Sequence record: PP496436.1
Length of the DNA: 64,000 nt
Direction: 5' to 3' (one strand)
Shown in pieces: positions 12,119 through 15,909 of the stretch. Below the pieces are notes generated by a model. That model made no database searches and was not told the origin of the DNA. It saw only the letters and a list, made by a program, of their open reading frames with translations. Both the position numbers and the translations under genes were made by a program. Numbering within the stretch: the stretch's first letter is position 1; the number at the start of each line of letters is the position of its first letter.

Positions 12119-13667
12119 CTTCTACTTCCTCTTCTTCCTCATCCAACCCGGCGCCGGACAAGTGGTTGAAATACAACTCCAGGCCACGGCCCGAAGAAAT
12201 CTGTGCGGCCAGCACTTCACGGATGTCGAAGTCTTTCACTTCCCATTCCGCCGTCAGCTCCTTGCGGGCTTTGCCTTTGAACAGAACCAGTTGCTTCAGG
12301 TCTTCCCACGTCAAGTCCAGCTCAGGGATAGACTTGCTGTCGGCGTGCAGCGTGAAGGTCTTCATGTTGCCGGACAACTGGCCGGTCATCCGCAGGTAGT
12401 ACCACGTATCCCAGACCGGATCGAAGCCACGACCTTTACCGGTGGCGTCACTGATCCACAAGCGCTGCCAGATTTCAAGGTTGTCAACCCCGTACTTGTT
12501 CTTGATCGCCTTCATGTTGATGAAGCGGTAGGTATCCGTACCGGATGCACCAACGCTCGGCTCTTCCATCGTTGCGCCAGTGGCCGAGATGAAGTCCGGA
12601 CAAACGCGAGGGGTCTGCATGATCCGGGCGCCCGTGGCGTGCTTGATCGCCATACCGCCAGGTTCGTAGTTCGGGTTGCCCATTCTCATACCCGGATTCT
12701 GACGAATCTGGTTAATCGACACCACGGTAGCCATCTTCTTACGGAGTCGGCCCCACACCTTCTTGATGTGTTTGGAGTGCATGCGCGCATCCAGAGCCAT
12801 ACCCCGGCTACCATCACCGTCTTCCCCTTCGTCTTCCTCGGTGGTCATCGAGGCGATGGAGTCGAGCAGGATCAGGCACTGCATCATGCCGCCGTTGGGC
12901 GACTTCATCCGCAGCTTGCCCTTGTAGATGGTATACTTGCCCTTGAACTTGCTCATGTTCTCTTTGGTGCGGTCATACAGCAGATACCACTCGCCGTTGA
13001 TATGCACCTTGTCGGGCAGCTGTTTCAGGATCGACGACATCACCTTGTAGAACTTCTCGCCCGAAGATTCGTTGTAGTAACGAATGCGAGGCGGGATGAT
13101 GTAGTTACCTTTGTCGTCCTTCACGCCGAACATACGCTTCATGCTGATCTTTATGCCTTGAGCTTCGAGCATGTTGACGATGTAGTCTTCGGCACCGGTG
13201 TTCTCATAGTCCCACCAAAAGGACATAGGAACGCCAGCCAGACAGATGGAACCCAACCACGACATCAGGTTGGTGGACTTGCCCGAGCCTTCTGGCCCTG
13301 AGAAGTTGTACCAGCCGCCGGGATAGATACCACCCGCCAGCATAAGATCGGTGCACAGCATCCCCGTGGACACTCGCCCTTCCCGGAGGATCTCCAAGTC
13401 CGATACGCCTTGGACGATGTTGAAGTGTTCCTCCACCTTGTCAATCATGGCGGTGACGCCCATCATGTCAAGTATTTCGTCTACCATGTCTTCGCGGGAC
13501 TTGGCAGGTGGTTCAGATTTTGCAGCGGCTGCTTTGTTGGCCCCACGCTTCGCGGGTACCTTGGCGTCCTCGATCAGCTTTTCCGCAAGTGCGCTGACCT
13601 TTTTCTTGGTTGCTACCGTCGCAGTCTTGACGGGTTTAGCTTTAGCTCTGGTAGTGGCTGCTGCCAT
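12111..13667 (-). CDS. recA: RecA/UvsX-like recombinase
   Basis: Walker A GPEGSGKST; RVSTGMLCTDLMLAGG; LILLDSIASM; VVSINQIRQ; GGMAIKH; KNK. Start moved to ATG 13667, downstream of the terminator. Confidence 0.9.
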   Translation of the reverse strand: MAAATTRAKAKPVKTATVATKKKVSALAEKLIEDAKVPAKRGANKAAAAKSEPPAKSREDMVDEILDMMGVTAMIDKVEEHFNIVQGVSDLEILREGRVSTGMLCTDLMLAGGIYPGGWYNFSGPEGSGKSTNLMSWLGSICLAGVPMSFWWDYENTGAEDYIVNMLEAQGIKISMKRMFGVKDDKGNYIIPPRIRYYNESSGEKFYKVMSSILKQLPDKVHINGEWYLLYDRTKENMSKFKGKYTIYKGKLRMKSPNGGMMQCLILLDSIASMTTEEDEGEDGDGSRGMALDARMHSKHIKKVWGRLRKKMATVVSINQIRQNPGMRMGNPNYEPGGMAIKHATGARIMQTPRVCPDFISATGATMEEPSVGASGTDTYRFINMKAIKNKYGVDNLEIWQRLWISDATGKGRGFDPVWDTWYYLRMTGQLSGNMKTFTLHADSKSIPELDLTWEDLKQLVLFKGKARKELTAEWEVKDFDIREVLAAQISSGRGLELYFNHLSGAGLDEEEEEVEDE

Positions 13668-13686
13668 GGAGATGTACCTGCGTCGT

Positions 13687-13731
13687 AAATAAAAATGGGG
13701 CACCGACCAGCGAACCGGCAGATGCCCCATT
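13687..13731 (-). terminator. Intrinsic terminator after the acidic protein and its in-frame extension
   Basis: AATGGGGCA/TGCCCCATT stem followed by a T-tract on the minus strand. Confidence 0.8.
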
Positions 13732-13747
13732 AGGGTTGCGCAACAGA

Positions 13748-13924
13748 TCACTTACGTGACTTGCGACGCTTCGCTTTGACCGTACTCACCGCCTTGAAGC
13801 CGGGCTTATTGTAGTCCGGTCTGGCATCGGCGGCGAGGTTGAACAACCCCCCGCTGCTCGGGTCAAAGCCTTTGGCGGATCGGCCCTTCGGCTTACCGCC
13901 GCCGGACTTACCGCCGGCCTGCAG
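13748..13924 (-). other. In-frame 58-codon basic extension after the UGA of the acidic protein (read-through candidate)
   Basis: TGA CTG CAG GCC GGC GGT AAG ... AAG TGA gives LQAGGKSGGGKPKGRSAKGFDPSSGGLFNLAADARPDYNKPGFKAVSTVKAKRRKSRK*; no ATG or SD of its own. Confidence 0.55.
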
Positions 13925-14728
13925 TCACTCGATGTCGAGTTCGATCTTCAGCTTTTTGGCCGCTTTGACGATCTTGTCCTTGCCCGCTTCGACAACTTTC
14001 TCGACGATGGCGTCGGTGTCGTCCTTGCGGCCGATGGTGATCTTCAGCGCTTTGGCCAGCGACTTCAGTTCGTCTTCGTCCAGCTCTTCGAGGGCGTCTT
14101 GGAGTTCTTCTTCCTCCTCTTCTTCCTCCTCGTTTTCTTCTTCCTCTTCTTCACCGTCGCCCAGTTCGATTTCCAGCTCTTCAGCTGCGTCACGAACGTC
14201 GTCTTCGTCTTCTTCGAGGATCAGCGCGATGATCGCGTCTTCGTCGTCTTTCTTGCCGACTTTGATTTCCAGCTCTTTGGCCAGCGCTTTGAGGTCTTTC
14301 AGAGAAACTTCACCGAGTTCGGCTTCGAGGTCGCCTTCCTCTTTTTCGTCTTCCTCTTCCTCTTCCTCCTCGTTTTCTTCTTCCTCTTCTTCGGATTCCT
14401 CCAGTTCGAGGTCGATGTCCAGCGCGTCGGCCGCGTCTTCGATGTCCGACTGCGAAGCACCTTCGGCCAGAGCTTCGGCCATGGCTTCTTCGTCAGCGCC
14501 CTTGGCGAACTTGACCTTCAGCTTCTTGCCCAGCTGCTTCAGCTCGTCTTCGTCCAGATCGGCCAGCGCTTCGATCAGTGCTTCCTTGTCGTCGCCCTTG
14601 TCACCGCCGCCTTCTTCGTCCAGCTCTTCCGCCAGTTCAGCGATTTCGGCGAATGCTGCCTTGGCCTTTTTGTCCTTGGTCGCTTCTGCTGCTGCTTCGG
14701 CCAGTTCGATGATTTTTTCAACAGACAT
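13925..14728 (-). CDS. Highly acidic protein with three Rho-N/HeH-like helical repeats and poly-Glu linkers
   Basis: Repeats LDEDELKQLGKKLKV, SLKDLKALAKELEI..KKDDEDAIIALI, LDEDELKSLAKALKI..RKDDTDAIVEKV; EEEEEENEEEEEEE occurs twice; GAGG SD. Confidence 0.85.
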   Translation of the reverse strand: MSVEKIIELAEAAAEATKDKKAKAAFAEIAELAEELDEEGGGDKGDDKEALIEALADLDEDELKQLGKKLKVKFAKGADEEAMAEALAEGASQSDIEDAADALDIDLELEESEEEEEENEEEEEEEDEKEEGDLEAELGEVSLKDLKALAKELEIKVGKKDDEDAIIALILEEDEDDVRDAAEELEIELGDGEEEEEENEEEEEEEEELQDALEELDEDELKSLAKALKITIGRKDDTDAIVEKVVEAGKDKIVKAAKKLKIELDIE

Positions 14729-14826
14729 GGTACATCCTCTTTACGGGTAGGGTGCCAACTAAGGCTCTTTAATCAACGGGGCGCCGTTTGGCTCACCCCG
14801 TTATACGAATGATTTACAGCGGTCTT

Positions 14827-15909
14827 TCAGCGACGACTTGAACGCGAGGATCTTGTCGAAGTTTTCTCTTTGTCGCGGCTGGTACGGCTGCTGCGTTCCG
14901 ACCGGCTCGACGTTGATTTACCGGACTTCTCCGGCTTATCCGCTTTCGCAGTCTTTTCGCGGCGGGAAGTACGCTCTGGCTTCTCTTCACGGCTGCTGCG
15001 CTTGCTGCCTCGCAGTGGACGATCCGATTCACGTTTACGCTTGCTGCCCCGGTCGAGATCCTTACCAGCTTTCTCTTCTTCCTCCTCGACTTCCTCGGCG
15101 TCAGGAGCCTTGGATTCCAAGCTTGCCACTTCCTTTACAGCATCTGCGTAGGACATTGGCTGGTCGAGGTTGCCGAGAATGTCCCACTGCAGATACTTCT
15201 GCTCGGTGCGGGACAGCGGGGTATGGCCTGTGCTGGAGTCCAACTGCACGTCATACATGTCCGACGCCGACTTCGCGTCTTTGTCGTAGGACACCAGAAT
15301 GTCCCGACCGAACTCGGGATCACCCAGCGGCATAATCTGCACGCCCTGCTTGGTTTTCACCTTGTTGGTGTCTTCCAGCTTCTTGATCTTACCAGCGATA
15401 CGGTCAGTAACCCGCATGACGCGAACCGGGGTCCATGAGGCGCTGTTGATGTTGTCCACGAAGCCGGTCTTCTTCTCGTTGGCCGAGTGCTCGGGGACAC
15501 GCTTCGGCTCGCTGTCTTGCAGTTCCCGCACGATGACCGGTACGTAGTAGTACTTCTTGGTCTGCTTGGGGTTTTCGATCTCAGCGAACGGGCAGTCGAT
15601 GGTGGTGTCGAAGGTGTCTGCATCCCGGTCGAAGTTCAACGGGGTATGCGAGATATCGAACTCACCCTTCGGCGTAACGATCTTGATCGAGTACACCACA
15701 TCTGGAATCGGATCACCGACGATACGCACAGCGATGAAAGCACCACCTGGCGGGTATTCGATCATCTTCACTTTCTTGTTGAAGTACACCCGTTTGCCGC
15801 CGGTCTGGCCAGCATTGGTCGCACCGAAACCTTTACGGGCTGGGGCAGCACCAACGCTACCACCTCCACCAGTACGGGTACGACCTGTTCTTGCACTGTC
15901 ACGTGCCAT
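14827..15909 (-). CDS. Putative single-stranded DNA-binding protein (gp32-like) with an Arg/Ser-rich tail
   Basis: Lies upstream of RecA; YYVPVIVR, GRDILVSY...MYDV pattern typical of phage SSBs; basic low-complexity C-terminus. Confidence 0.55.
   Translation of the reverse strand: MARDSARTGRTRTGGGGSVGAAPARKGFGATNAGQTGGKRVYFNKKVKMIEYPPGGAFIAVRIVGDPIPDVVYSIKIVTPKGEFDISHTPLNFDRDADTFDTTIDCPFAEIENPKQTKKYYYVPVIVRELQDSEPKRVPEHSANEKKTGFVDNINSASWTPVRVMRVTDRIAGKIKKLEDTNKVKTKQGVQIMPLGDPEFGRDILVSYDKDAKSASDMYDVQLDSSTGHTPLSRTEQKYLQWDILGNLDQPMSYADAVKEVASLESKAPDAEEVEEEEEKAGKDLDRGSKRKRESDRPLRGSKRSSREEKPERTSRREKTAKADKPEKSGKSTSSRSERSSRTSRDKEKTSTRSSRSSRR

Follow-up and report, generated by a model that had tools for sequence, protein, structure and literature searches.

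Programmed read-through of a UGA stop by a near-cognate tRNA of the host probably gives one gene of a jumbo phage a second, C-terminally extended product. The gene, Illi2_00094, encodes a protein rich in Glu and Asp and lies in a 64,000-nucleotide stretch of DNA (bases 62001-126000 of PP496436.1), referred to here as the window; positions are those of the window unless another sequence is named. The source is Pseudomonas phage vB_PpuM-Illi-2 (hereafter Illi-2), a 201-kb lytic jumbo myovirus of P. putida that comes from the Estonian CEPEST collection and belongs to genus cluster G3 (PMC7616413).

The open reading frame (ORF) of the acidic protein has 267 sense codons and ends at a TGA followed by C. 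The same frame then stays open for 58 codons (13751-13924) up to a second TGA. An earlier reading made from the letters of the window, called here the sequence-only reading, had proposed that this one gene yields forms of 267 and about 326 amino acids. The proposal is now strongly supported: by alignment, the TGA, the frame and a homologous tail are kept in nine Pseudomonas isolates and in four distant lineages. Comparison among the lineages shows the extension to be protein-coding in the frame of the upstream ORF, joined to it by a conserved TGA, and apparently to lack a start of its own. From this we infer how the stop is decoded, which residue is inserted there and in what ratio the two forms are made.

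The open frame and its coding content

The features that the sequence-only reading had listed for the extension were recovered when the sequence was recounted and scanned. The translation contains 10 Lys, 5 Arg and 3 Asp. There is no in-frame ATG in the Illi-2 extension, and its only in-frame near-starts are a CTG at codon 1, a TTG at codon 27 (inside the conserved core described below) and a GTG at codon 46. A terminator-like hairpin with a run of T is found only past the second stop.

The open run by itself is not significant against chance. In a crude gene set of the whole Illi-2 genome, 38 of 214 genes (18%) are followed by at least 58 open codons past the stop, the next gene being in the same frame in most cases. 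What goes beyond chance at this locus is codon usage and conservation. The codon score of the extension in frame 0 is 0.47 per codon, as compared to 0.51 ± 0.22 in true in-frame windows of Illi-2, and just 0.2% of out-of-frame windows score as high. The codon usage of the extension is typical for genes of Illi-2, as had been claimed. Frame 0 is also the sole stop-free frame of six, both in the four lineages scanned and in L026, a metagenomic contig introduced below.

Conservation of the extension

Eight further Pseudomonas isolates are 92-98% identical to Illi-2 across the locus. All of them have the TGA followed by C, the 58 codons and the second TGA, with zero indels. Since both TGAs are kept in nine independently sequenced isolates, a sequencing error or a private nonsense mutation is ruled out.

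Outside the Pseudomonas group the extension was found in four lineages, namely the Vibrio coralliilyticus phages GR7B and GR11A and two metagenomic contigs, L025 and L026, which were located via their recombinase homologues. The two Vibrio phages gave tblastn matches to the extension with E-values (E) of 8-9, insignificant database-wide; both matches fall exactly inside an unannotated gap upstream of recA. In the phage collection searched, no recombinase outside the Pseudomonas group is nearer than their recA product (48% identity). The gene order in both is sigma-like factor, single-stranded DNA-binding protein (SSB), acidic protein, gap and recA. The acidic ORF ends with TGA and is followed in frame by 44 (GR7B) or 50 (GR11A) sense codons, TAA TAA and a hairpin terminator. 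The same succession is seen in L025 (recombinase 53% identical), where TGA is followed by 79 codons, TAA and a terminator, and in L026 (recombinase 49% identical, recA containing an intein), where TGA is followed by 41 codons, TAA and a terminator. All four distant lineages thus keep the synteny SSB / acidic gene / recA, with recombinases 48-53% identical to that of the window.

Judged by their alignments, the extensions of the five lineages are homologous. Those of Illi-2 and GR7B match with E 8e-8 in a pairwise BLASTP comparison, in which the alignment starts at codon 2 past the TGA. An alignment of six extension sequences has five invariant columns, and a Lys/Arg run ends every sequence. 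The linkers differ in length, and the indels across the five lineages are all multiples of three. The core peptide reads FDPSSGGLFN in Illi-2, YNPSSGGFFN in GR7B, FNPSAGGLLQ in L026 and SKRGGFFN in L025.

The sequence-only reading had proposed that related phages be aligned for a conserved in-frame TGA and a bias of the extension towards synonymous change, and both were found. In a gap-free block of 36 codons, GR7B and GR11A differ in frame 0 at a synonymous proportion (pS) of 0.65 and a nonsynonymous proportion (pN) of 0.13. These values are indistinguishable from those of RecA in the same pair (pS 0.69, pN 0.12), and the extension is tighter than the acidic body (pS 0.66, pN 0.26). In the two shifted frames the pattern is reversed. 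Between GR7B and L026 the silent sites of the extension are saturated (pS 0.97) and pN is 0.34. The substitution pattern in frame 0 therefore indicates that the extension is translated in the frame of the upstream ORF.

The extension segment is absent from all twelve annotations or gene calls, and the records of the nine Pseudomonas phages have no feature annotated over it; annotation pipelines end the gene at the TGA, and the extension is missed because of this. Searches of larger collections added no member to the clade. Scans of IMG/VR with the extension, the recombinase and their alignments found no clade relative and one locus only, similar to that of phage NCTB. A scan of metagenome contigs found only NCTB-like loci (38% identity, without the acidic gene), and a scan of genome contigs found no match.

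Identity of the junction stop codon

UGA is the leakiest of the stop codons (PMC7026636). The stop at the junction is TGA in all five extension-bearing lineages, whereas the stops that end the extensions vary (TGA, TAA TAA and TAA). TGA ends 86 of 214 crude genes (40%) in Illi-2 and 32 of 217 (15%) in GR7B. On the assumption that the AT-rich lineages resemble GR7B, four further TGAs would come about by chance with a probability near 5e-4, or near 3e-3 with the Vibrio pair counted as one. The agreement in frame of the four lineages beyond the discovery lineage would arise by chance about 1 time in 81, counting the frame alone. Two related lineages, L027 and L028, have the acidic gene and no extension; there the gene ends with TAA TAG and TAA, respectively, directly before the terminator. 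Every lineage, with the extension or lacking it, has a terminator-like hairpin and T-run 3' of its final stop.

The sequence-only reading had also pointed to the leaky context UGA-C. This holds for the Pseudomonas phages and fails elsewhere, where A, A, G and A follow the UGA. The wider claim that the genome as a whole is not recoded was borne out by the many genes that end with TGA and by the lack of tRNA genes in the phage.

Proposed synthesis of two products

It is proposed that the majority of ribosomes terminate at the UGA at 13925-13927 and release the 267-amino acid acidic protein. A minority would decode this UGA and translate the following 58 codons up to the second UGA, giving a form of about 326 amino acids. 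The residue inserted at the UGA would most likely be Trp, carried by a near-cognate tRNA of the host, because the phage has no tRNA genes. The long form would add a flexible linker of Gly, Ser and Lys, a conserved hydrophobic peptide and a polybasic end to the acidic body.

Read-through may further serve as a regulated device for dosage of the replication and recombination machinery, over and above basal leakiness, although we regard this as rather unlikely. The UGA-specific release factor 2 (RF2), or else the condition of the infected cell, would then set the fraction of the acidic protein that carries the docking peptide and basic tail. This fraction would in turn control how far the protein is tethered to, or cross-links, DNA coated with SSB and UvsX. 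If so, programmed read-through would be described here for the first time among the genes of DNA metabolism in a tailed phage.

Evidence against read-through and alternative explanations

Several observations weigh against the proposal. The support for read-through is all of one kind, comparison of sequences, and the functional model given below is built from domain resemblance and gene order. Only five lineages with the extension are known, and the extension is dispensable in some backgrounds because two relatives do without it. Among the Pseudomonas phages the coding signal is weak: the extension has 13 variable sites, distributed 3/3/7 over the three codon positions, and between Illi-2 and Peetri pS is 0.094 and pN 0.046. 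The third codon positions of the extension are unusually conserved in this group, which may reflect a constraint at the RNA level or merely the small sample. The base after the junction TGA varies over the five lineages (C, A, A, G and A) and provides no common context. The 80 nucleotides after the TGA fold no better than shuffled sequences (z -0.6 to -0.9), and they contain no hairpin that is significant or common to the lineages. As no stimulatory signal was found, read-through may be basal only, perhaps 1% or less in hosts with efficient RF2. Lastly, three lineages have an in-frame candidate start before the conserved core, from which internal initiation is possible: in GR11A an ATG lies within the linker and is preceded, four bases upstream, by an AAGGG stretch, in GR7B there is a GTG and in L025 a TTG. 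A downstream hairpin was considered as a stimulator of read-through or as a selenocysteine insertion sequence (SECIS) element; it was rejected, the fold being neither significant nor common to the lineages.

These candidate starts bear on the explanation that the extension forms a small gene of its own, whose translation begins internally or by re-initiation and whose frame agrees with that of the acidic ORF by coincidence. The ATG of GR11A with its AAGGG is the best argument for such a gene, and small ORFs are often overlooked in annotation. However, the candidate starts of GR7B, GR11A and L025 are at non-homologous positions, there is no ATG, GTG or TTG in frame before the core in the Pseudomonas phages, and L026 has none of the three anywhere in its extension. 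Conservation begins with codon 2 past the TGA, at a point upstream of the GTG of GR7B. In all five lineages the extension shares the frame of the upstream ORF, and a single stop, always TGA, stands between the two. Furthermore, a search with an extension profile among 5.8 billion proteins found zero separately called homologues. A separate gene is for these reasons improbable. A still smaller likelihood is given to the explanation that the 174 bases are untranslated, be it as a conserved 3' untranslated region or regulatory RNA of the recombinase gene, or as a relic, now in decay, of a longer gene that a nonsense mutation had truncated. It would agree with the small excess of third-position changes in the Pseudomonas group and with the nucleotide diversity (pi) among the nine isolates. 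The pi of the extension (13748-13924) is 0.022, close to that of true intergenic DNA (0.016-0.019; the stretches compared include 13668-13747), and the extension is more conserved than the flanking genes (SSB 0.067, acidic ORF 0.039, UvsX 0.041). Between lineages, however, silent sites are saturated and amino acids kept, and this in frame 0 only; the other five frames contain stops and the codon usage is gene-like. Neither an Rfam family nor a significant fold was found in the segment, and a decaying remnant would not retain the frame and the TGA over five lineages between which every indel is a multiple of three.

The remaining explanations accept that the TGA is decoded and differ in the decoder. 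Insertion of selenocysteine by SelB and tRNA-Sec of the host would fit the presence of UGA in every lineage, yet none of the Rfam SECIS families is matched even when E is allowed to reach 10, the folds past the UGA differ among lineages besides being no better than shuffled, and the codon opens a disordered Gly/Ser/Lys linker, near which there is no redox motif. Selenocysteine is accordingly given very little weight. Least probable of all, and close to negligible, is the explanation that TGA is a sense codon, by genome-wide reassignment or a phage-encoded opal suppressor. Reassigned stop codons are known from other phage lineages, and GR7B has a single tRNA-like gene, unannotated, whose anticodon loop is aberrant. 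Against this stand the frequent use of TGA as a gene end in both Illi-2 and GR7B (counts given above), the zero tRNA genes detected by ARAGORN in the complete Illi-2 genome and the annotated features, which are all protein-coding genes (235 of 235 in Illi-2 and 240 of 240 in GR7B). Because its loop has no TCA triplet, the tRNA-like gene of GR7B is not an obvious opal suppressor. Read-through of the UGA by a host near-cognate tRNA is, in our assessment, the likely explanation.

Gene order and features of the locus

The acidic gene lies, as the sequence-only reading had placed it, between genes for SSB and a RecA family recombinase (Table 1). The ATG of the recombinase gene is at 13665-13667.

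Table 1. Features of the Illi2_00094 locus and sequences used for comparison. Positions refer to the window unless another sequence is named.
Feature	Position	Strand	Basis and remarks
SSB, 360 amino acids, basic Ser/Arg/Lys-rich C-terminal tail	14827..15909	-	Upstream gene; PHROG 15004 (E 9.6e-35) and record annotation
Acidic ORF Illi2_00094, 267 sense codons, annotated 'hypothetical protein'	13928..14728	-	ORF list and record
Layout of the acidic ORF: three helical SAP/HeH/Rho_N-like repeat modules with poly-Glu linkers between	13928..14728	-	AlphaFold model and profile homologues
In-frame TGA, proposed leaky stop, next base C	13925..13927	-	9 of 9 isolates; homologous junction in GR7B, GR11A, L025 and L026
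Extension codons 1-19, flexible linker rich in Gly/Ser/Lys	13868..13924	-	Translation
Extension codons 20-41, conserved core with FDPSSGGLFN	13802..13867	-	Alignments; E 8e-8 against GR7B
Extension codons 42-58, basic tail with terminal Lys/Arg cluster	13751..13801	-	Lys/Arg run at the end in every lineage
Second stop TGA, end of the long form	13748..13750	-	9 of 9 isolates; TAA TAA or TAA in relatives
Intrinsic-terminator-like G+C-rich hairpin and T-run, 3' of the second stop	~13691..13730	-	Sequence and terminator scan
UvsX-like (RecA family) recombinase, 518 amino acids	12111..13667	-	Downstream gene; PF00154 (E 6e-15); synteny anchor
SSBs compared	window 14827-15909 (-); L010 1629-2624; L025 1323-2420; L012 2104-3402; L013 2057-3319
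7-deazaguanine genes	Illi-2 L022 32652-35031, L023 16957-20637; GR7B L034 4211-7496, L035 500-2090; L010 1-187 (TGT domain)

Inteins or homing-endonuclease domains (Pfam LAGLIDADG_3 and Intein_splicing) break up several recombinase homologues (P0006, P0011, P0025 and L026 453-3962). The recA of L026 was called as two ORFs by the gene caller, and in Erwinia jumbo phages (H54-H81) the tblastn match to the recombinase falls in two pieces across about 2.3 kb.

The tRNA-like gene of GR7B is located at 111562-111646 of MT366760.1 (L035 11562-11646, plus strand), between the RNase HI gene and GR7B_00128. It matches the Rfam tRNA family with 45.5 bits (E 2.5e-8) and encodes the CCA end. The region of its anticodon loop has 17 nucleotides as compared to 9 in the model, and the anticodon is not assignable by ARAGORN.

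Both phage groups contain a 7-deazaguanine gene set that consists of QueC-like, QueE-like, GTP cyclohydrolase and TGT-domain proteins. This gene set suggests that the DNA of the Pseudomonas and Vibrio phages carries a modified guanine.

The acidic protein and its possible function

The AlphaFold model of the acidic body has a mean pLDDT (the confidence score of the model) of 86 and consists of three four-helix modules, which are separated by disordered poly-Glu linkers; residues 115-129 and 194-197 are disordered. The modules are reflected in the DNA of the gene, where they repeat every ~96-150 nucleotides, and the poly-Glu linkers at 14105-14169 and 14345-14409 form a 65-nucleotide direct repeat that is 86% identical. 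On the plus strand, the GAA-rich acidic gene has an antisense shadow at 13839-14750, a Ser-rich ORF of 303 codons.

Direct searches revealed little about the protein. The acidic protein has nothing above threshold in Pfam or PHROGs, and the extension nothing at all. A sequence search of PDB with the acidic protein gave 0 matches, and Foldseek against PDB with the acidic body gave nothing significant, the best match being a SAP domain with E 9.8. A word-indexed protein search with the alignment of the acidic protein returned only the members of the alignment itself, since candidates of low complexity swamped the results. A profile search of 1.8 billion representatives found the repeat module of the acidic body in 20 proteins. 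When 15 sequences (14 of them profile homologues) were scanned with Pfam, Rho_N was found in 7 (best E 1.7e-15), SAP in 5, HeH in 1 and DUF669 in 2. The best full-length homologue outside the clade, P0033, has a different gene context and no extension.

Several of the homologues bear the repeat module as a C-terminal tail on an SSB-type N-domain. For example, DUF669-type and gp32-like SSBs (P0031, P0039, P0042, P0044 and P0045) have the same helix-extension-helix module with acidic runs (profile E 1e-10 to 5e-4). In these proteins the module is fused to the SSB fold and none has a read-through tail, whereas in Illi-2 the module is a separate gene beside an SSB whose own tail is basic. In this phage family every SSB has a polybasic run at its C-terminus, which resembles the end of the extension. 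In the more distant phages NCTB and Yoloswag there is no separate acidic gene, and the tail of the SSB alternates long poly-Asp/Glu and poly-Lys blocks.

The acidic body may be a free-standing form of a SAP/HeH-plus-poly-acid module that makes up the SSB tail in other phages, and might because of this work together with the neighbouring SSB and UvsX. Tentatively, we suggest that the acidic protein is a detached, SSB-tail-like accessory of the SSB/UvsX module that acts on replication and recombination intermediates, and that a docking peptide and a basic end are added to it in the long form; we hold this to be possible rather than probable. The read-through tail would provide a small fraction of the molecules with the docking peptide and with a basic end that binds either DNA or acidic segments. 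The long form would thereby tether or cross-link the acidic protein at these intermediates. The roles put forward in the sequence-only reading, a nucleic-acid mimic, a chaperone or a former of condensates, are conjecture.

Two readings of the extension were dropped. Its core could be taken for a recombinase-binding motif of the RAD51/BRC type ('FxxA'), but L025 lacks the Ala and L026 has Leu in place of the Phe. The family SSBs have a common short N-terminal basic peptide of the Gly-Phe-Gly type; mimicry of this peptide by the extension is unsupported, with a profile-profile probability of 0.4%.

Comparison with known recoding systems

Programmed stop-codon read-through is textbook knowledge in small RNA phages and in many eukaryotic viruses. 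In the coat/A1 system of Qbeta-like phages, similar to what is proposed for Illi-2, a leaky UGA ends an abundant protein, a host tRNA decodes it in the absence of any phage-encoded tRNA, and a minor, C-terminally extended form is made from the same mRNA (see also PMC7026636). The settings differ. Qbeta is a small single-stranded RNA phage in which a virion protein receives a long, folded extension, while Illi-2 is a 201-kb double-stranded DNA (dsDNA) jumbo myovirus in which a gene of the SSB/recombinase module has a short (41-79 codons over the lineages), apparently disordered and basic extension. The resemblance is one of mechanism only; a sequence relationship was neither found nor expected.

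In dsDNA phages, frameshifting produces isoforms with a common N-terminal body, a different C-terminus and a fixed low ratio, as in the tail assembly chaperone G/GT and the T7 capsid proteins 10A/10B. Like the junction in Illi-2, these recoding sites are near the 3' end of the gene, and the arrangement is conserved by position and not by sequence. In G/GT and 10A/10B, however, the frame shifts at a slippery sequence in structural or assembly genes that have no sequence relation to the Illi-2 gene. In Illi-2 the frame is unchanged, the stop codon itself would be decoded and the gene belongs to a replication/recombination module. TGA is likewise decoded in stop-reassigned phages and in selenocysteine insertion; Illi-2 differs from these in that TGA is a common true stop and neither a suppressor tRNA nor a SECIS-like element is found.

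In tailed dsDNA phages, recoding is known almost solely as frameshifting in structural genes. Literature searches aimed at stop-codon read-through in dsDNA phages found no case, and the term read-through is absent from the paper that describes these Pseudomonas phages (PMC7616413). On the comparative evidence the Illi-2 gene is likely to be a case of programmed stop-codon read-through in an unusual setting, that is, in a dsDNA jumbo phage, in a gene of DNA metabolism and with no detectable stimulator.

Significance

The usual evolutionary signature of read-through, a conserved leaky stop followed by a frame-specific, protein-like extension, is present here in phages of Pseudomonas and Vibrio and in uncultured ones, and the gene that bears it is non-structural and lies between those for SSB and recombinase. 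Research on recoding gains with it a bacterial system that has cultured phages and tractable hosts. It also draws attention to a putative, uncharacterised acidic partner of the phage SSB and UvsX, whose two forms may differ in localisation or binding.

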